A stretch of 64,000 nucleotides of DNA from positions 22,382,001 to 22,446,000 of the forward strand of contig CM106586.1 of assembly GCA_048013815.1 (NCBI GenBank), given 5' to 3'. A program made the position numbers and the translations under genes. The notes under the pieces were generated by a model, which saw nothing but the letters and a program-made list of their open reading frames with translations, was not told the origin of the DNA and did no database searches. This DNA comes from Setoptus koraiensis (Eukaryota; Animalia; Arthropoda). Shown here in pieces: positions 1 to 7,473 of this stretch (position 1 is its first letter; every line of letters starts with the position of its first letter).

Positions 1-61
1 TTTCATAGAGTGTTTGTCAGTGGCGGCCCTCTAAACACCTTCTCAGGTAGTCCTAGCTCAA

Positions 62-310
62 GTGTCATTGATAGCCAATTGGAAGGAGTTGATTGTGGTA
101 ACTTCGAATAGATTGATTGGCTTGCAGCAACAACAACAGCGACAACCCACTTCCGGGTTCGTCATACGCGCCGAATTGGGCCCCAATCAGGCCGCTGTGG
201 AACAAAGTCTCGAGATGATCAAAAGCAACATCTATTGGCGAAGTCACATTGAGTCCCGATTCACCAAGTGGCTCGGTCAGTGCGAGGCCATGAACAGAAT
301 CTCCAGGTGA
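62..310 (+). CDS. Probable last coding exon of an M1-family aminopeptidase (aminopeptidase N/ERAP-like C-terminus); gene starts upstream of the window
   Basis: ELGPNQAAVEQSLEMIKSNIYWRSHIESRFTKWL resembles the terminal helices of M1 aminopeptidases (A-V-x-Q-x-L-E-x-I-x-x-N-I-x-W ... W-L). The exon 5' boundary is unresolved. Confidence 0.5.
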   Translation: MSLIANWKELIVVTSNRLIGLQQQQQRQPTSGFVIRAELGPNQAAVEQSLEMIKSNIYWRSHIESRFTKWLGQCEAMNRISR

Positions 311-1334
311 CGCTATCACGAAAAATTGAAGGCAAAACTGAATGGACGAGACAAAATTATCATCGGCAATCGACTGTATGGGTGATTGCTGATGATAGTG
401 TGCCCATGTACAGTTTGCATTCACTACAATAACCGTCAATGTTGGAATTGATAAAGTTACCATGTAAATAGGTGGCAGTGTTAGGCCATGTCAGCATCTG
501 TTACTTGATATTCTCGAGTGGTCCCGCCAGGGTAACTAGCAGCTGAACAAAACATTTTTCTCATGTGAGAAAGCACCTTTGTTTCTGAAATATAGAGATG
601 TGAAACAAGAGATATTTGGTTTTTAGCGCCCAATTCCAATTGAGTAGCGATAGGGTTAGTGATGGTTCATACGTTTATTCGTGTGACTAGTACAATCAAG
701 CTTTTTTTAGGCAAATATAGAACATAGGATGAACGTTATCTCTAAATTCCTCAGCTATCACACATACAATCAACACAGCCAAGGTCGCATGACTCAGTGT
801 CAGATATCAGCTACGTGGGGCGAGACCCATCAGTTGCGCACAGTGACAGGTTATCTTCTGGTACAGGTACTCTTCTGAACGTATCGACCATTCATTTCCA
901 CACAGAAAATAATAAGCGCTCGTGATACTGCTATAATAAGCAAAACTTGTGATATCTTGTTTTGGCGACATCTAGAAACTATCTGCAACAGGCGCTCAGC
1001 ACGTGGGATTCACATTGCAAAGTTTACACAACTATCTATAGATATAACTTGCCATATTCGGCATTTAAACGAAGTCTGAAAAGTGGATCGGCTGTTACAT
1101 GGTCTATATCCAAGAGGTAACATTTGGCTGTTCGCTATATTCATAGAAACAATTGTCCGCAAATAAAAATTTCTTCCTGGATCATTGGAACGAGAAAAAG
1201 GGTTTACAGTGTAAATAGTGGGACTATTCGAATGACCTACTGTCGCTTCTTATTCTGGCACATTCACAAAGGTTCAGAAATATTGAAGCTCAAGATATAA
1301 TTCACCGGAAGGGGACAACAAAACAAGCGCAATA

Positions 1335-1892
1335 ATGATTTATACACTGATTGCCGCGGCTATCTTAATGACAATCATTGTTTACACCAGTCATGAACCA
1401 AAACTTGAACTTCCTGAATGTGATATGTACTCACAAAACTTGGCTCGTAATCGCAGTGAATATGATCCCCTATTTTTGTTCATCAAAGAAAATTGTCCAT
1501 CGAAGGACTTGTTGGCACATATTCTATGGGTTAAGGTTGCGAACTCGCTAACACCCCGATATACGTCTATCATAAACCCCGATCTAAAACGGTACAGACT
1601 TATGAATGAGCAGAAAATGGAACAAATCAGATGGTTGAGTGAGGCAGAGAGTAAAGTATCCGAGTATTACTCTACGGTGGCAGACATGGCTACTCGGCCA
1701 TCAACTGAACCAGAGAGTCTCGTGATTGTTACTGAAATCACCAGATACCCCAGCTCAAGCGCCATCGATGACCTGTTGAAAGAAGTTGATGATGACAATC
1801 TAGAGTCAATTGATCGACTCGCAATGGATTACTTCTGGACGCATCACGAAGATGAGAATATTTTGAAGTTCCTGCGGGTTGCAGTGAATTAA
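1335..1892 (+). CDS. Intronless orphan protein, 185 aa, with an N-terminal signal peptide or signal anchor
   Basis: Clean ATG-to-TAA ORF with protein-like composition. Hydrophobic N-terminus MIYTLIAAAILMTIIVYTS. AATAAA motifs follow at about 1925 and 1945. No family recognised. Confidence 0.6.
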   Translation: MIYTLIAAAILMTIIVYTSHEPKLELPECDMYSQNLARNRSEYDPLFLFIKENCPSKDLLAHILWVKVANSLTPRYTSIINPDLKRYRLMNEQKMEQIRWLSEAESKVSEYYSTVADMATRPSTEPESLVIVTEITRYPSSSAIDDLLKEVDDDNLESIDRLAMDYFWTHHEDENILKFLRVAVN

Positions 1893-2198
1893 AAAGTTTA
1901 TAAATTAGCTTGACACACTTACTTAATAAACTTACAAAACAGATAAATAAAACAGAGAGTGAGACAGGTTGCGAGTTCTTCTGTGATTTGAAGAGAGCGA
2001 CCCCTGGTGCGATATCATCCCGAACAAAAAACGGTTCAAACTTGGCGCGCTCACATTAAATATAAAGAAGAGTTGCAATGAAAATTGACAAGGAACTTGC
2101 TGTGTGATTTATATCAAAACAATTAATATTCACGATGATTATTCTCTCCGCATTGAATCAAGTTTATCTGATTCCCTTTATATTGTGACCGCCATCCT

Positions 2199-3542
2199 AT
2201 GCTAGATCAGTCTGCATTCTTTGCTGTAGCTTCCATGGTGATAATTCTAGTGACAATTTTCAAATTACTATCCTGTGCCTCTTGCCTCAGTAAAAACAAG
2301 AATAAACATACTAGGAAAAATGATCCCGCCGTGGCCGCCACCGAGTGTGACGTCCAACATTTGGCCACCCCAATATTAATTTATCCGAGGCCTTTCTCCG
2401 AGCCTGCCGATCGATCTTATGACACAGTAGATGCTATACAAGAGAGCTCCAGTATTAATCACAATAATAATCATATTAATAATAATAATGATGGTGAAAA
2501 TGACCAACAAATAGCTGCTCGAACAGGATTAACGCCCATACCGGCCAGCATATCCCCGGTGCCCTCCTCATTGATTCAACACCATCCACAACAACAACAA
2601 CAATTACAACAATTACAATCACAGCAACTACTACCACCACATGCAACCAGCAGCGGTAATAATAATATCAATACTATTTCTGTAAATAATAATATTAATT
2701 CATCTGAACAAATTATCCAATCTCAGCAATCAGACACTCGTCAACCCGCTGGACACTCCTACGATATCATCTCAGTTAGGGAGCCCTTGGCTAACGTTCT
2801 GGCAGGTAGATTGAATACTCAAGACGCCACACAAGGAACATCTCGATCAACAAAAAGCACACAAAAGCAAACGTCGGGAGATCATGAATATATCGAAGTA
2901 GATAGTGAGAGGACATCATGTTTCTATGAAGAAATTGCCCTGACTAACAATAATACGACCGGTCCAGTCTATTCTGTAATTGACAAATCAACAAAAAAAT
3001 CAACCATTCCAATCACATTGCCCAGCTCATCGTCACAACGTTCGAGTTCTAGTCCAATTAATGAGCAAAACATTGATCTTCTATATGCAAAGATCGACAA
3101 AGGTGGTGAATCATCTAGGAATGCAATGAAGATGATGGATAGTGATCATCCCACCACCTCTTCTCCTCAACCCCAATTGCCACCTAGGCCGTCTTCCTCA
3201 TCCGTCATGATACCATTATCAAGTAATTCTCAATCAAATGTCACAAGGCAACAGAATAAGCCGCCAGGATATGATCAAATTTATGGTTTAGATGATGACG
3301 AGTCGGAGTGTGATGTAGGTTACGAATTCGTCAGATCAAACACATACCAAGAAATTATCGATGCTGGTTACGAAAAAATTAAAGAACCTGCCAATGCAAA
3401 TAGTTCAACCATGGCTGATTATGGAGGCTATGAAATTGTTCAGCCTGTTTATTCCTCACCCTCTGGAACCCTAGCGGAGCCAAATTACGAAGTTATTAGG
3501 TCTTGCCAACTTGCACCTTCAAATGATGAATCTAATCGGTAG
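2199..3542 (+). CDS. Single-pass transmembrane adaptor-like protein, 447 aa, with PAG1/LAT-type architecture
   Basis: About 5-aa ectodomain, TM helix (approx. aa 6-25), juxtamembrane CASC, basic KNKNKHTRK, then a disordered tail with 12 YxxI/V motifs and a PQLPPRP proline-rich motif. Intronless. Confidence 0.7.
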   Translation: MLDQSAFFAVASMVIILVTIFKLLSCASCLSKNKNKHTRKNDPAVAATECDVQHLATPILIYPRPFSEPADRSYDTVDAIQESSSINHNNNHINNNNDGENDQQIAARTGLTPIPASISPVPSSLIQHHPQQQQQLQQLQSQQLLPPHATSSGNNNINTISVNNNINSSEQIIQSQQSDTRQPAGHSYDIISVREPLANVLAGRLNTQDATQGTSRSTKSTQKQTSGDHEYIEVDSERTSCFYEEIALTNNNTTGPVYSVIDKSTKKSTIPITLPSSSSQRSSSSPINEQNIDLLYAKIDKGGESSRNAMKMMDSDHPTTSSPQPQLPPRPSSSSVMIPLSSNSQSNVTRQQNKPPGYDQIYGLDDDESECDVGYEFVRSNTYQEIIDAGYEKIKEPANANSSTMADYGGYEIVQPVYSSPSGTLAEPNYEVIRSCQLAPSNDESNR

Positions 3543-3867
3543 AAATAACCAAATACAAAACTTGTGTTGAGATACGTCACAATGACATGAAGCCTTCGAC
3601 AAGCAACTATGATATGGTCGCCCTAGAGTTTCGTTATCATGGCTATGAGTAAAAGTTCATCATTAATGTCTGTTTGACCTTAGCTATTATGTAAATGTAT
3701 GCATTAGGTAAAAAGAATAATTCATATGGACACTAGATGAGGAGGGAACTCTTCAATGATAGCGAGCTTTGCTTCAAACTTTTATAAGTCACGCTTATAA
3801 TGAACGGTGATATACTGGTATTCTACAGTTTATTAATCACAGTCAATAAACAAAATCAGATATTGGA

Positions 3868-4671
3868 TCAAGTATCTAGTTCTCTTTTGGCAATTTCTAA
3901 GACTGGTTTCGTAAAATCATTGAACTCATGATGTTCCTCTTGTAAGAATGTCTCATGTAGCTCTCTCCAGGTCATGGCTAACCTGCGGGATTTAATATCG
4001 TGCGGTAAAATGCCGTGCATCCAGTCGTGTCTTGCCTCACCATTGATTATTACTAATGATCGTTCTGGCATTGGTATTATTATCTCATAAGGCGGTTCGC
4101 TAAACTCTTTAGTTAATCTAAGTACAGTAGGAGATAAAAGATTGATAGTTATCAAGCGATCGCCCCAGACCCACTTATCATCGTAATGAGGACGTATGTA
4201 AGAGCTCCTTGTTGGAAGATACTCTAGGTTACATAATTCTACGGGTATAAAGGTACCTAATTGAGAGGGGTATTTTTTCTTCAAAGAGTTGAATAGTTCT
4301 ATGGCGTATTTGGGGAACCCACAAAATTCTCCAACTCTCACTCTTTGTTTCTTGAAGTTTATCTTGGGTCCAAAGTCCTGTTTTATTCTACCCTCCTGTG
4401 ACTCCGACCAACATTTGTAACTATCTATGTTATCGACAAGCTCTATCTCTTGTGATTCAGTTATTACATCTGGTTCTACAAAAACGCCTTGGATGGGCAC
4501 AAACTCGGCCTTCATGTCATCATCATCTGCCATGAAATGGTCCTTGTGATCACTTGATATCCACGCTTTGTCGCCGCATAGTCTACAGAAAATATACCCA
4601 GGCTTGATTGTCTTCTCTATAGCTGATATAGGAACAAGATTGGCACATTCACACATATCTAAATCCGTCAT
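3868..4671 (-). CDS. ALKBH4: Alpha-ketoglutarate-dependent dioxygenase AlkB homolog 4
   Basis: SQEGRIKQDFGPKINFKKQ, PVELCNLEY, HYDDKWVWGDRLITINLLSPTVL and ARHDWMHGI match ALKBH4. The HxD...H triad is intact. Intronless, 267 aa. Confidence 0.95.
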   Translation of the reverse strand: MTDLDMCECANLVPISAIEKTIKPGYIFCRLCGDKAWISSDHKDHFMADDDDMKAEFVPIQGVFVEPDVITESQEIELVDNIDSYKCWSESQEGRIKQDFGPKINFKKQRVRVGEFCGFPKYAIELFNSLKKKYPSQLGTFIPVELCNLEYLPTRSSYIRPHYDDKWVWGDRLITINLLSPTVLRLTKEFSEPPYEIIIPMPERSLVIINGEARHDWMHGILPHDIKSRRLAMTWRELHETFLQEEHHEFNDFTKPVLEIAKRELDT

Positions 4672-4697
4672 GATTGAAGAGAAGTTTGCGCCAACCT

Positions 4698-4871
4698 CTA
4701 AGGTTCTTTTTTTGGAGATTGTCTTTGTTCCAGTTTTATCTTCAACCTTTCTTGATCGCGATAAATTCCTTCCCTCATGGATTTTCTCTCATTTTCTTGT
4801 TGTAAGTGTACTCCAATAATGATGCCAGAGGACACCAGACATATAACTCCTATAAGAATTTTGTTGGACAT
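4698..4871 (-). CDS. PET117: Cytochrome c oxidase assembly factor PET117 homolog, 57 aa
   Basis: MSNKILIGVICLVSSGIIIGVHLQQENERKSMREGIYRDQERL matches the PET117 pattern (S-K-x-x-L ... GVH-x-x-Q ... R-x-G-V/I-x-RD-x-ER). ATG at 4871 is preferred over the TTG start in the ORF track. Confidence 0.85.
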   Translation of the reverse strand: MSNKILIGVICLVSSGIIIGVHLQQENERKSMREGIYRDQERLKIKLEQRQSPKKEP

Positions 4872-5730
4872 TATTTGATCAATGTAGCGTGTCAAGTAGT
4901 AAGTTTAGACAGAAGTCTGAAAGATTCCATTGGGAGATTTGTTTCTTTCGTGACTAAGTGCTTCGCCAAACGGGCGTGAGAGGCACTCGCAACGTTACAA
5001 CACAAGTGTATCGCCGAATGCTTCAATTGTTGTGTTGATCGTAAAACTTCAACACCAACTGTGCCAGAACAGCTCACTCGAATCTGTTGTGCACATCGCG
5101 CTTACACTAGAATCTGATCAGCGCCTCTCTCGAGTAATTATTGAACTGCAAGAAAAAACTCACACAGTACGAATTGTATAACTGAAACGTGGATATCCAC
5201 ATTAGTCAGACCATCTGACTCAGATGTTTCCTATACAAACTTCAATCATTGGAGATCAATGATTGTTTTTTCAAAGTATCTAGAATAGAATTTTCTCTGC
5301 TGCTTGCCCAAACACGCCCCCTCTCTACAATCTAAACGTGACAAGAGCCCTGCTACCCGGGGTATTTAAATAATGCCTACTGGGCACGACAAGCCAGATA
5401 TGCAATTGTTCTCATGTGTGTATTTTCCTGCTTATGATCGCATAAATCACGTTTCCACCATCAGACAATCTTTCGACATAGACTTTGATTGGGTTGCAAT
5501 AATTCTATTATTTAATCTATAGTTCACAATTGAATTCAGGATATGAGGACTATTTTCTCAATCACATCGTTTTCGTCCTCAACTATTTGTAATCCAATAG
5601 ATTCTGACATTTAGATTAGTCATTAGCATCCGTTAATAATTCTATATAAGAGTTTGAAATTCCTGTACCAATATCAAAAAAATATATTTGTTTGTTCAGC
5701 AACCTAGGAGAAATTCATAATTAAGAGACA

Positions 5731-7473
5731 ATGGCTTTAAACTGGCACGAGTTACTAAGATCAGCGCCACACGAGCTTAGAATATCTGGACCCAAGCATT
5801 CAAGCCAAATTGAAGAAGAGAAAGGACTCAATGATATTGTCTACAGAATGTACTCACTCAATTTTATGGAGGTCAGTAAGACAACATTGTACACCATTTC
5901 GGATAGAATCAAAGAATTGGAAAATTTAACGGCTCTCATGCTGTACGACAATAAATTGACATCGATACCCAGAGAGATTGGTCGTTTGAAGAAACTCAAG
6001 ACATTGGATATATCCAACAATCAGATAAAAGTTTTGCCATCGGAGCTGGGCCAATTGTCTGAGTTGCAATCTTTTAACATGATCAACAATCAAATATCGC
6101 AATTGCCCAAAGACCTGTCTAAATGGTCCAATCTTATAGTTATAAAGTTCAGTCACAATCATTTTGACCAATTCCCAGCTTCTTTGTGCAATCCAGCTCT
6201 CAAGCAACACCTATTGGAGATACATGGGACAGACAACAAAATAGCTGATATACCAGATGAGATCGGTCAATTGTCGGCACTGAAAGTATTTGATCTCTCC
6301 AACAACAAAATATCGATGGTGCCTGGTGAGCTGGCCGATTGCTCCAAGATAAAAACTTTGTCTCTCCAAGGTAATCCAATCAAAGATAATCGCTTGTTGA
6401 AACTGATCGAAAGAAACCCTGCTAAACAGATTATGCAATATATCGCCAAAAATAATGCTCGTGGCGCTGGTGCAGCTAAAAAACAAAGTTCGGACAACAC
6501 TAATTCAGCGGAGAGCGGTGGCGATGATGCGGTGGAGTTAACAGCTACTAAACAAACTGAATCCGCAGCTGTGGCTGCTCCCCCTCCACCGAGGCGCAAA
6601 AACGAGCCAGCACTTATCGGAACGATAGAGATACTAGCGGTCGCTCCAGATAACTGGTTCATAATCAATGCAGAGAGTGCCATACTAGAGGATCGTAAAA
6701 TCGTAGCTTGTATTGTGAGAAATTTGAATCTCCTCGACGAGAAAGTTTTGAAAAAATTCATATCTTTACAAACTACTATTCACGATACTGTATGTGGTCG
6801 GCGAGAACTTTCAACAATAGCCACTCATGACCTATCTAAAATTGCTCCAAGAATTAAGTTGACCAAAATGTTGCCGCATCGAATAAAAATTGAACCTCTG
6901 AATCGCGGAGGAAAAATCATGACCGGCTCAGAGCTTTATAAGACTCTGAACCAAGAAGCTGAAGCTTACAGGAAGGAAAAGAAGAGAAGTAATTACAGCG
7001 GAATACATAGATATTTATACTTGTTGAAGGATAAGACCCACTATCCAGTAGTCGTAGATGCAAACAACGTAGTTATAACCTTACCACCTTTAACGAATGG
7101 GGAATCTACAAAGGTATAGTTGAAATTTTTATTGATTTCTAATTGATTTTTGCTATCGACTTATAGTAATCAACCTTTTCTCACTCATTCATAATATTTA
7201 CAGATCACCTCTGCTACACGAGATGTACTCATCGAAGTTACTGGTTCAAAAACCCCTAACTGTAAGAAGGCTTTGGATACCCTTTTACACGATATGTTGA
7301 AGATGGAGTTCGATGCCTCCGGTCCAGACCCACAGACGGGGCTCCCTTCACTGAAAGTTGAACCTGTTAGGGTTGTCAGGAGTGATGAGGAGGATAAATT
7401 GTTCTGTGTATATCCGTCAAAAGTTGATCTAATTTTAGACGACATCAATATAGTAAGACACTTCAATGGATAA
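5731..7473 (+). CDS. LRRC47: Leucine-rich repeat protein 47 (LRRs plus PheRS-beta B3/4-like domain), 550 aa; exons 5731-7113 and 7204-7473
   Basis: N-terminal LRR array, then FISLQTTIHDTVCGRRELSTIATHDL and VITLPPLTNGESTK. A 90-bp phase-0 GT-AG intron (7114-7203) joins in frame to ITSATRDVLIEVTGS...VYPSKVDL. Confidence 0.92.

Follow-up and report, generated by a model that had tools for sequence, protein, structure and literature searches.

In a 64,000-nucleotide stretch of the Setoptus koraiensis genome (contig CM106586.1, positions 22,382,001 to 22,446,000; hereafter the window), we found a predicted gene for a candidate membrane adaptor, whose features are collected in Table 1. The original prediction had described at this place an open reading frame, a transmembrane (TM) helix, a CASC motif and twelve tyrosine motifs; all of these are found, and the observation as a whole is confirmed. 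No antisense ORF of at least 60 aa runs across the gene, tblastn detected no paralogue inside the 64-kb window, and a scan of bacterial and archaeal genomes gave no match to the gene. Four RNA-seq runs under a matching species label yielded zero reads over positions 1-5800 of the window, the organism being apparently absent from them.

Table 1. Predicted features of the candidate adaptor gene, in nucleotide positions of the window
Feature	Position	Strand	Basis
Complete single-exon CDS (predicted), 447 aa plus stop	2199..3542	+	Uninterrupted 447-codon ORF; protein-level relatives at E 1e-15 to 1e-16 (phmmer)
Five-residue N-terminal (exoplasmic) stub MLDQS, net negative	2199..2213	+	Translation; topology inferred from the positive-inside rule
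Predicted TM helix, residues 6-24 (AFFAVASMVIILVTIFKLL)	2214..2270	+	Kyte-Doolittle 19-residue maximum 2.52, at residues 6-24; single AlphaFold2 helix at residues 4-28, pLDDT >90
Juxtamembrane C26-A-S-C29, candidate S-acylation site	2274..2285	+	C29 identical in every aligned full-length relative
Basic patch K32-K40 (KNKNKHTRK)	2292..2318	+	Translation; same feature in PAG (PMC2213442)
DVQHLATP block, conserved, without assigned partner	2349..2372	+	Alignments of relatives
S187-R204, SYDIISVREPLANVLAGR: Y188 plus near-invariant 17-residue block	2757..2810	+	Alignments of relatives
ITAM-like tandem Y231-IEV-x8-Y243-EEI	2889..2936	+	YEEI invariant in 27/27 sequences
Y258-SVI (PVYSVIDK), pY-[S/A/T]-x-[I/V] type, candidate Csk SH2 site	2970..2981	+	Cf. 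Cbp YSSV (PMC3492796)
LLYAKI (Y296), ITIM-like	3078..3095	+	Counterparts only in TM-type relatives (EMYAKV, NLYTKV)
PQLPPR, residues 325-330, class II PxxPxR SH3-ligand motif	3171..3188	+	PPR invariant in alignment A1; pLDDT about 70
C-terminal Tyr cluster: Y375 (GYEFV), Y383, Y391 (GYEKI), Y411 (GYEIV), Y418 (YSSP), Y430 (EPNYEVI)	3321..3497	+	Alignments

The anchor and tail of the window protein

The N-terminus bears out the claims of a tiny ectodomain followed by a TM helix, and of a juxtamembrane CASC, which occupies residues 26-29 and is followed by the basic patch. The helix contains no charged residue, and its flanks are negative on the N side and strongly basic on the C side, a distribution of charge that suggests an N-out/C-in orientation.

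The remainder of the protein is an acidic tail (pI of the whole protein 4.99), for which AlphaFold2 gives a pLDDT below 50-55 nearly throughout, consistent with the disorder originally proposed, rising to about 70 only at residues 321-330. The translation contains all twelve of the listed tyrosine motifs: YDTV (Y74), YDII (Y188), YIEV (Y231), YEEI (Y243), YSVI (Y258), YAKI (Y296), YDQI (Y358), YEFV (Y375), YQEI (Y383), YEKI (Y391), YEIV (Y411) and YEVI (Y430). The pattern Yxx[ILV] thus holds 12 of the 16 tyrosines, against a mean of 2.6 in shuffled tails, with none of 20,000 shuffles reaching 12. A motif scan of the window protein found no YxN, YxxM or NPxY. Several of the conserved tyrosine sites carry Gly at -1 (GYE), which is not known as the classical preference of Src kinases.

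The SH3 ligand proposed as PQLPPRP is likewise present, as a PxxPxR motif whose PPR is invariant in alignment A1. As for the ITIM-like LLYAKI, it exists in the window protein, where it and VGYEFV match the pattern [ILVS]xYxx[ILV], but it is not kept in most relatives. We considered and rejected an ITIM-bearing inhibitory receptor: there is no ectodomain, and counterparts of LLYAKI occur only in the relatives P0034 and L014.

Relatives and their two kinds of N-terminus

We identified about 35 relatives of the window protein, all unnamed and without a Pfam match: 29 proteins came from one search and 20 from an exhaustive search of 1.84 billion representatives, to which P0034 and the L014 ORF were added. 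The mite adaptor family as used here comprises the window protein, P0001-P0036 and the L014 ORF; its shared blocks are seen in alignments A1 and A2. BLASTP against P0034 recovered two blocks, at E 2e-10 and 6e-5. Searches of Pfam, NCBIfam and PDB sequences with the window protein, the A1 profile and two conserved pieces of P0004 returned noise or low-complexity matches only. Profile libraries miss the mite adaptor because only short linear motifs are strongly conserved.

These motifs follow one another in a common order: the Cys motif, YDIISVREPLA, HEYIEV-x8-9-FYEEIA, VYSVI[ND]K, PxxPxR, GYE[LF][LV], D.GYEKI, GGYE.V and EP.YE.I. Eight of the 16 tyrosines of the window protein are identical in 26/26 aligned relatives, as compared with 48 of 401 other tail residues conserved at 90% or above (Fisher p 3.6e-4), and no other type of residue is conserved as well as tyrosine, with Glu and Pro also prominent, while the linkers are unalignable. 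SCFYEEIA is invariant in 27/27 sequences, and PVY258SVI[DN]K, of the same pY-S-x-[VI] type as the Cbp site, is kept among relatives. The check that had been proposed, conservation of the tyrosine motifs and of the cysteine, therefore came out in favour of the prediction, C29 being invariant. Two further blocks, DVxHLATP and YDIISVREPLAxVLAxR, exceed the length of an SH2 site and point to partners beyond those of the model given below. Concerning genomic context, the relatives lie beside other genes than the window gene does (GCD14, NDK, syntaxin and ribosomal protein genes). L001 has a 252-aa neighbour, which shows no relation to the 2OG-oxygenase gene of the window.

The family also extends the initial description, in that most relatives have no TM helix altogether. 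P0034 and the L014 ORF, both distant relatives, resemble the window protein in having a stub, a TM helix, a CVC or CCVC motif and a basic patch, whereas about 29 relatives lack the helix and start with MGR..C-x-x-C. We could not find any TM-grade segment in the 33 other relatives, nor in the 1.5 kb that precede their starts. In the TM-less proteins the start MGR[IVLM][KR][GVS] is conserved, with upstream stops; one or two cysteines follow, at residues 9 and 12, separated by basic residues. Such a start suggests a lipid anchor, presumably N-myristoyl and/or S-acyl, though Arg after Gly2 is disfavoured under the classical N-myristoylation rule. Since the TM helix is replaced by MGR..CxxC in most relatives, membrane tethering seems to be all that is required of the N-terminus. 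The family tree is unrooted (no outgroup, saturated branches in the divergent rows), and the direction of the exchange between TM helix and lipid anchor is one that we would only infer.

Likeness to PAG/Cbp and to other adaptors

PAG has a short extracellular stub of 16 aa, a TM helix with CSSC directly after it and then a basic stretch, followed by an acidic tail (about 400 aa, pI 4.4) in which 9 of 10 tyrosines lie in Yxx[VLI] and which holds a proline-rich SH3-type site and ITAM-like pairs (PMC2213442); the Csk site of Cbp is YSSV (PMC3492796). Compared feature by feature with these published descriptions, the window protein shares the type III topology with a tiny stub (5 aa), the dicysteine after the TM helix (CASC) preceding a basic stretch, and the acidic tail of some 400 aa (pI 5.0), with 12 of 16 tyrosines in the same pattern. 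Both have Src SH2 sites of the YEEI/V type, a single YS-x-V/I site and SH3 sites rich in proline. The PAG1 motifs YSSVNK, EPDYEAI and NDYESI may also resemble sites of the mite family, a likeness that we treat as a lead only.

There are differences as well. The PAG C-terminus is a PDZ-binding end, which the window protein lacks; the mite family has the extra blocks DVxHLATP and SVREPLAxVLAxR; and most of its members, which are from mites and not vertebrates, have no TM helix. Moreover, hmmscan against Pfam-A gave no match to the PAG profile PF15347, either for the window protein (E up to 1) or for 21 family members (19 aligned members, P0034 and the L014 ORF; E up to 10). The label 'PAG/LAT-type' of the original prediction is thus right as to the PAG architecture, which is matched point by point; with no sequence homology to PAG, LAT, LIME1 or SCIMP detected, it stands for an analogy and not for family membership. 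In our best reading of this analogy, the window protein would work like PAG/Cbp, yet outside that family.

A short stub, a TM helix, juxtamembrane Cys and a disordered tail of Tyr motifs are also common to LIME1, SCIMP, SIT, LAT and NTAL. PF15234, used for LAT/NTAL, gave no match, and homology to LIME1, SCIMP and SIT was likewise not detected. LAT and NTAL act via YxN sites for Grb2/Gads, a type of site missing from the window protein, as are YxxM and NPxY; the lack of LAT/NTAL-type YxN sites makes it PAG/LIME-like rather than LAT-like. A comparison by language-model features placed nearest, among named clusters, LIME1/PAG, PAG, LIME1, SCIMP, HCMV UL135, poxvirus A36R and LAT, membrane-anchored phosphotyrosine adaptors throughout; recognition was low, and these clusters are a lead only. 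Three unnamed arthropod clusters, 703-759 aa in length, also came up in that comparison. The TM-less P0004, run as a control, had no usable named match, so these neighbours mirror the overall architecture and say nothing of the tail alone.

The TM-less relatives recall a different kind of anchor. Src-family kinases carry myristoyl-plus-palmitoyl anchors at their N-termini (PMC3492796), and the Met-Gly start of about 29 relatives, in which one or two Cys at 9 and 12 flank basic residues, is similar to such SH4 domains and to FRS2. In contrast to these, however, the mite family has no PTB, SH2 or kinase domain, Arg follows Gly2, and the window protein itself is anchored by a TM helix. Poxvirus A36R, HCMV UL135 and EPIYA effectors are membrane-tethered disordered proteins with Src-phosphorylated Tyr sites, as is predicted for the mite protein, and we take the family site EP[NG]YE[AV]I to resemble the EPIYA-type Csk/SHP2 sites. 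Unlike these viral and bacterial mimics of Src substrates, the mite gene is a host gene in a compact genome with conserved relatives, and the likeness is at the level of motifs only.

A candidate phosphotyrosine docking scaffold

Our preferred reading of the gene, to which we give a probability of about 0.6, is that its product is a phosphotyrosine docking scaffold, intrinsically disordered, tethered to the membrane and functionally of the PAG/Cbp-LIME type. The protein would be inserted N-out/C-in with its five-residue exoplasmic stub, and the tail would be held at the inner leaflet by S-acylation of Cys26 and Cys29 and by binding of K32-K40 to acidic lipids. A Src-family kinase could then dock through its SH3 domain on PQLPPR and phosphorylate the conserved tyrosines, of which pYEEI, pYEKI, pYEIV and pYEVI would hold Src-type SH2 domains, while pY258-SVI, similar to the YSSV of Cbp, may recruit Csk. 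A kinase with tandem SH2 domains (Shark/Syk, for example) might bind the ITAM-like Y231/Y243 pair, at whose YIEV site SHP2/Csw is an alternative candidate, and pY418-SSP might take Crk. The outcome would be a membrane platform that concentrates Src-family signalling and feeds back on it. Csk, Src, Shark and SHP2 are putative partners of the mite adaptor. Against the scaffold model we count the GYE sites, the unexplained long blocks, the low recognition of the language-model match and the lack of detectable homology to characterised adaptors.

An alternative that overlaps with this scaffold model, and differs from it solely in the principal partner, is that of an ITAM-type signalling subunit (compare DAP12/FcR-gamma and the Draper tail), which would act mainly through Shark at Y231xxV-x8-Y243xxI and not through Csk. 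The window protein, P0034 and L014 do share the pair Yxx[VIM]-x6-12-YEEI, as do 29 of the 31 long relatives, an acidic residue precedes the first tyrosine (DHEY), and ITAM-like pairs have been noted for PAG too (PMC2213442). We nevertheless consider it unlikely, in view of six or seven more tyrosines and an SH3 ligand that are conserved equally, of a tail of about 400 aa that far exceeds those of ITAM subunits, and of a TM helix without a charged residue for receptor pairing, which most relatives do not even possess. Less probable again is that the tyrosines act unphosphorylated, as YxxPhi sorting or endocytosis signals or as contacts for other domains, in a trafficking or cytoskeletal scaffold. 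The sorting consensus of AP complexes does include Yxx[ILV], and further partners are evident from the non-SH2-like blocks DVxHLATP and SVREPLAxVLAxR, but sorting needs far fewer sites than the eight or nine that are conserved separately. Glu/Asp at +1 and the invariant YEEI match SH2 specificity, and such sites, when combined with PxxPxR in an acidic protein tail, characterise processive Src substrates.

The ORF could also be the last exon of a receptor with an upstream signal peptide and ectodomain, or code for a cleaved signal peptide and a secreted protein, both of which we regard as highly improbable. An AG at 2204-2205 might serve in principle as a splice acceptor; however, an in-frame stop (2169-2171) lies ten codons 5' of the predicted ATG, and the one short intron that can be drawn (44 nt, 2162-2205, from an ATG at 2135) breaks the frame and runs into a stop, so that this upstream exon was rejected. 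Further upstream, the ORF at 1335-1892 closes with a stop, and AATAAA signals come after it. The relatives all begin a few residues from the Cys motif, with in-frame stops 1-18 codons upstream of each start examined, and none has an ectodomain. As most of them have no hydrophobic segment, the tail must be cytosolic. An upstream exon adding a large ectodomain, which the original prediction had envisaged as counting against it, is therefore made improbable both by the stop and by the relatives.

Both Csk and Src are conserved throughout the animal kingdom. Csk itself lacks a membrane anchor, and vertebrates rely on phosphorylated scaffolds, Cbp/PAG1 among them, to bring it to Src-family kinases (PMC3492796). 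In the literature searched, we could not find any description of a PAG-type transmembrane adaptor in an invertebrate, for which a conserved mite family of PAG-like design is a concrete candidate. A bolder proposal, which we put forward as tentative and doubtful, is that the mite family is the working counterpart of Cbp/PAG in invertebrates, palmitoylated, phosphorylated by Src and recruiting Csk via VYSVI[ND]K, and that its anchor changed once within mites, from TM helix to SH4-like lipid anchor or the reverse, leaving the docking sites untouched. Were this true, arthropods would have the Src-Csk feedback platform that has been regarded as a vertebrate innovation, whether inherited from a very ancient common ancestor or acquired convergently. 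The family is also a natural experiment: depending on the lineage, one and the same docking tail is attached to a TM helix or to a lipid-type N-terminus, which isolates the role of the anchor.

The window gene and its surroundings

An in-frame stop at 2169-2171, ten codons 5' of the ATG, precedes the reading frame of the window protein (see table), and the opposite strand holds no ORF of at least 60 aa across the gene. The sole short intron that can be drawn (2162-2205), which would add an upstream exon, was rejected because it breaks the reading frame; an ectodomain could come only from a splice into codons 1-5. Four RNA-seq runs contributed no reads at 1-5800 of the window; apparently they do not contain this organism, so they do not bear on the 5' end. 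The likely 5' leader contains two short ORFs, the longer stopping 10 nt short of the main ATG, which itself lies in a weak context (C at -3).

The upstream neighbour belongs to no Pfam family and has only a weak match to KIAA2026_hel (E 0.089). As AATAAA-like signals follow its stop codon, it is a gene separate from the window gene. On the downstream side, the stop codons of the window gene and the oxygenase gene are just ~325 bp apart.

Features of the window gene, its protein and its neighbours, with the conserved blocks of the family in N- to C-terminal order
Feature	Position	Strand	Remarks
Upstream neighbour ORF, 185 aa	1335-1892	+	own TM-grade segment at start, IMIYTLIAAAILMTIIVYT, KD19 up to 2.44
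Short leader ORF, 9 codons	2078-2107	+	
Short leader ORF, 17 codons	2135-2188	+	
Window gene, single ORF, 447 codons	2199-3542	+	
N-terminal stub, MLDQS			5 residues, start of window protein
Hydrophobic stretch, AFFAVASMVIILVTIFKLL			directly after stub
S-C26-A-S-C29			after hydrophobic stretch
Basic run, KNKNKHTRK			after S-C26-A-S-C29
Tail, ~405 residues			C-terminal remainder; S/N/Q/P/T-rich, pI 4.99
Block 1			Cys motif
Block 2	2349-2372	+	DVxHLATP (DVQHLATP in window protein)
Block 3			[KR]LSYDIISVREPLAxVLAxR
Near-invariant segment of block 3, SYDIISVREPLANVLAGR	2757-2810	+	
Block 4			DHEYIEV, 8-9 residues, SCFYEEIA
Block 5			IPVYSVI[ND]K
Block 6			PxxPx[RK], one to three sites
Block 7			NGYE[LF][LV]
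Block 8			D[VA]GYEKI
Block 9			GGYE[SI]V
Block 10			PIYSSPS
Block 11			EP[NGK]YE[AV]I
Downstream convergent neighbour, 267 aa	3868-4671	-	2OG-Fe(II) oxygenase superfamily; PF13532, E 6.9e-5, under gathering score

The best Kyte-Doolittle score of the window protein over a 19-residue window (KD19) is 2.52, at residues 6-24. AlphaFold2, supplied with the family alignment, gives a single helix at residues 4-28 (pLDDT > 90) and no secondary structure beyond it; in the tail, pLDDT is nearly everywhere below 50-55, rising to ~70 at the proline-rich site 321-330. All twelve tyrosine motifs listed in the original prediction, as well as CASC, LLYAKI and PQLPPRP, are found in the protein. Yxx[ILV] accounts for 12 of its 16 tyrosines, compared with an average of 2.6 in 20,000 shuffles of the tail, none of which attained 12; this density is no chance pattern.

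A conserved tyrosine-rich family in mite-like genomes

Among 5.8 billion proteins, a word-indexed search retrieved 18 relatives (E 1e-15 to 1e-5), a profile built from these brought the total to 29, and an exhaustive phmmer search of 1.84 billion cluster representatives returned 20 matches, all from the same family. The window ORF is a real gene. No names or Pfam domains exist among the relatives, whose contigs are gene-dense and carry adjoining eukaryotic housekeeping genes (ribosomal proteins, NDK, syntaxin, GCD14); all genomes in which the family turned up are mite-like and compact. The exact sequence of the window protein was not found in the searched collection, and no relative is more than ~55% identical to it, over short blocks, making it a divergent family member. 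Two TM-type relatives were recovered: P0034 (693 aa; E 4.6e-5 in a search using only the central block of P0004, a TM-less relative), and a 637-aa ORF (1852-3765) at locus L014, from a metagenome scan. BLASTP aligns the window protein with P0034 over a central (E 2e-10) and a C-terminal block (E 6e-5).

Across the family, short blocks are kept in fixed order, separated by unalignable linkers. The original prediction had been made to depend beforehand on conservation of the tyrosine motifs and the CxxC, and such conservation was found: once 26 relatives are aligned to the window protein, eight of its 16 tyrosines (Y188, 231, 243, 258, 375, 391, 411, 430) are identical in 26/26, although Y74, Y296, Y358 and Y383 are not family-wide. 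Y418 is identical in 88% of aligned relatives. By comparison, conservation of at least 90% is reached by just 48 of 401 non-tyrosine tail residues (Fisher p 3.6e-4), and among residue types tyrosine ranks first, with glutamate and proline next. SCFYEEIA is identical in 27/27 sequences, and an ITAM-like pair (Y231xxV-x8-Y243xxI) occurs in the window protein, 29 of 31 long relatives, P0034 and L014. Look-alikes of LLYAKI and TYQEI are present in both distant TM-type relatives.

DVQHLATP is common to the window protein and the TM-less relatives only, and the segment at 2757-2810, near-invariant in all relatives, is far longer than an SH2 site. The DVxHLATP and SVREPLAxVLAxR blocks fall outside what the proposed adaptor model explains. 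The TM-less relatives P0001-P0028 have an Ala-rich helix-like end, ASELAAAATARLxAAAxVI (e.g. P0004 residues 575-599), which the window protein, P0034 and L014 lack. The short relatives P0030 and P0033 carry tandem repeats with YAVVNRPN-type or DGYESVQP-type units, which suggests that tyrosine motifs have multiplied locally as repeats, or that the assemblies are at fault.

A TM helix or a putative lipid anchor

No TM-grade segment exists among P0001-P0033, whose top KD19 (1.62) lies in a C-terminal Ala-rich helix. Nearly all full-length members of this set begin with MGR[IVLM][KR]..[FL][CRK]xFC; in P0010, called from MKILFC, an in-frame MGR precedes the called start. At the four TM-less loci inspected, in-frame stops lie 4-18 codons 5' of the start, and the coding strand is free of hydrophobic segments for 1.5 kb upstream, indicating that the MGR starts are the true N-termini. 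With Gly2 and, at positions 9 and 12, one cysteine or two, their layout recalls the way in which Src-family kinases are anchored by myristoyl and palmitoyl groups (PMC3492796). In these proteins Gly2 is followed by an arginine, which is disfavoured for N-myristoylation, so a lipid anchor is putative.

P0034 and L014 share the design of the window protein: a 9-17-residue stub precedes a TM helix (KD19 2.65-2.87), after which come CVC or CCVC, a basic patch and an extended acidic tail holding 13-17 Yxx[ILV]. The central and C-terminal blocks of the window protein recur in both as well; stops lie 1-3 codons 5' of their ATG. In a maximum-likelihood tree these two group together (support 100/96) and the window protein is placed with the lipid-type proteins, which lie on one side of a branch (70/71), so that a single anchor change is sufficient. 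Under a midpoint root of this unrooted tree, whose divergent branches are saturated, the TM form would be ancestral and the lipid form derived. Whichever the direction, the sequences indicate a constant docking tail on an exchangeable tether, as expected if the N-terminus is merely a membrane tether and the tail is cytosolic. For the family, a receptor with a hidden ectodomain and a secreted protein are both ruled out by the presence of the same tail on exchangeable TM and lipid-type tethers.

Likeness to PAG/Cbp and a proposed mechanism

In PAG, an extracellular stub of 16 aa leads into a TM helix of 20 aa, directly followed by CSSC and then by a basic stretch; its 397-aa tail (pI 4.4) bears Yxx[VLI] at 9 of 10 tyrosines and two SH3-type sites rich in proline. 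The protein carries palmitate, and both Src-family kinases and Csk bind to it through their SH2 domains (PMC2213442). In Cbp, the Src SH2 sites are four YEEI/V motifs, with one Csk site, YSSV (PMC3492796). This anatomy is matched by the window protein in its stub, TM helix, dicysteine, basic run, acidic Yxx[ILV] tail and SH3-type site. The original assignment to a PAG/LAT-type adaptor thus holds for architecture but fails for sequence membership, as 21 family members gave no Pfam match to PAG, LAT, LIME1 or SCIMP at E up to 10. NCBIfam and PDB sequences gave no match either.

In a language-model feature search, three unnamed arthropod clusters (scores 0.90-0.91) were followed, with low recognition, by LIME1/PAG, PAG, LIME1, SCIMP, HCMV UL135, poxvirus A36R and LAT. 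These named neighbours are a strikingly coherent set of membrane-anchored phosphotyrosine adaptors, which we treat as a lead only: given the low recognition, and as a TM-less relative had no usable named match, the search bears on architecture only. YxN, YxxM and NPxY are all absent from the window protein, and nothing therefore points to LAT/NTAL/FRS2-like recruitment of Grb2/Drk, PI3K or PTB proteins. Most likely, by analogy, it works like a PAG/LIME-type adaptor, but we do not assign it to those families; its likeness to PAG1 could reflect common descent or convergence.

We infer all functional roles of the family. By analogy with PAG/Cbp, C26 and C29 would be S-acylated, PQLPPR would dock Src-family SH3 domains, the conserved tyrosines would be phosphorylated processively, Src-type SH2 domains would bind YEEI, YEKI, YEIV and YEVI, and Csk would be recruited at Y258-SVI. 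Alternative partners may be SHP2/Csw at YIEV, Crk at YSSP, or a tandem-SH2 kinase (Shark/Syk) on the ITAM-like pair. The SH2 preferences behind these assignments are established knowledge.

The literature searched describes no Cbp/PAG-type adaptor from any non-vertebrate, which is not proof of absence. New here are an unannotated mite family with transmembrane-adaptor design and, within it, a natural exchange of the anchor, which is a TM helix in some members and lipid-type in others.
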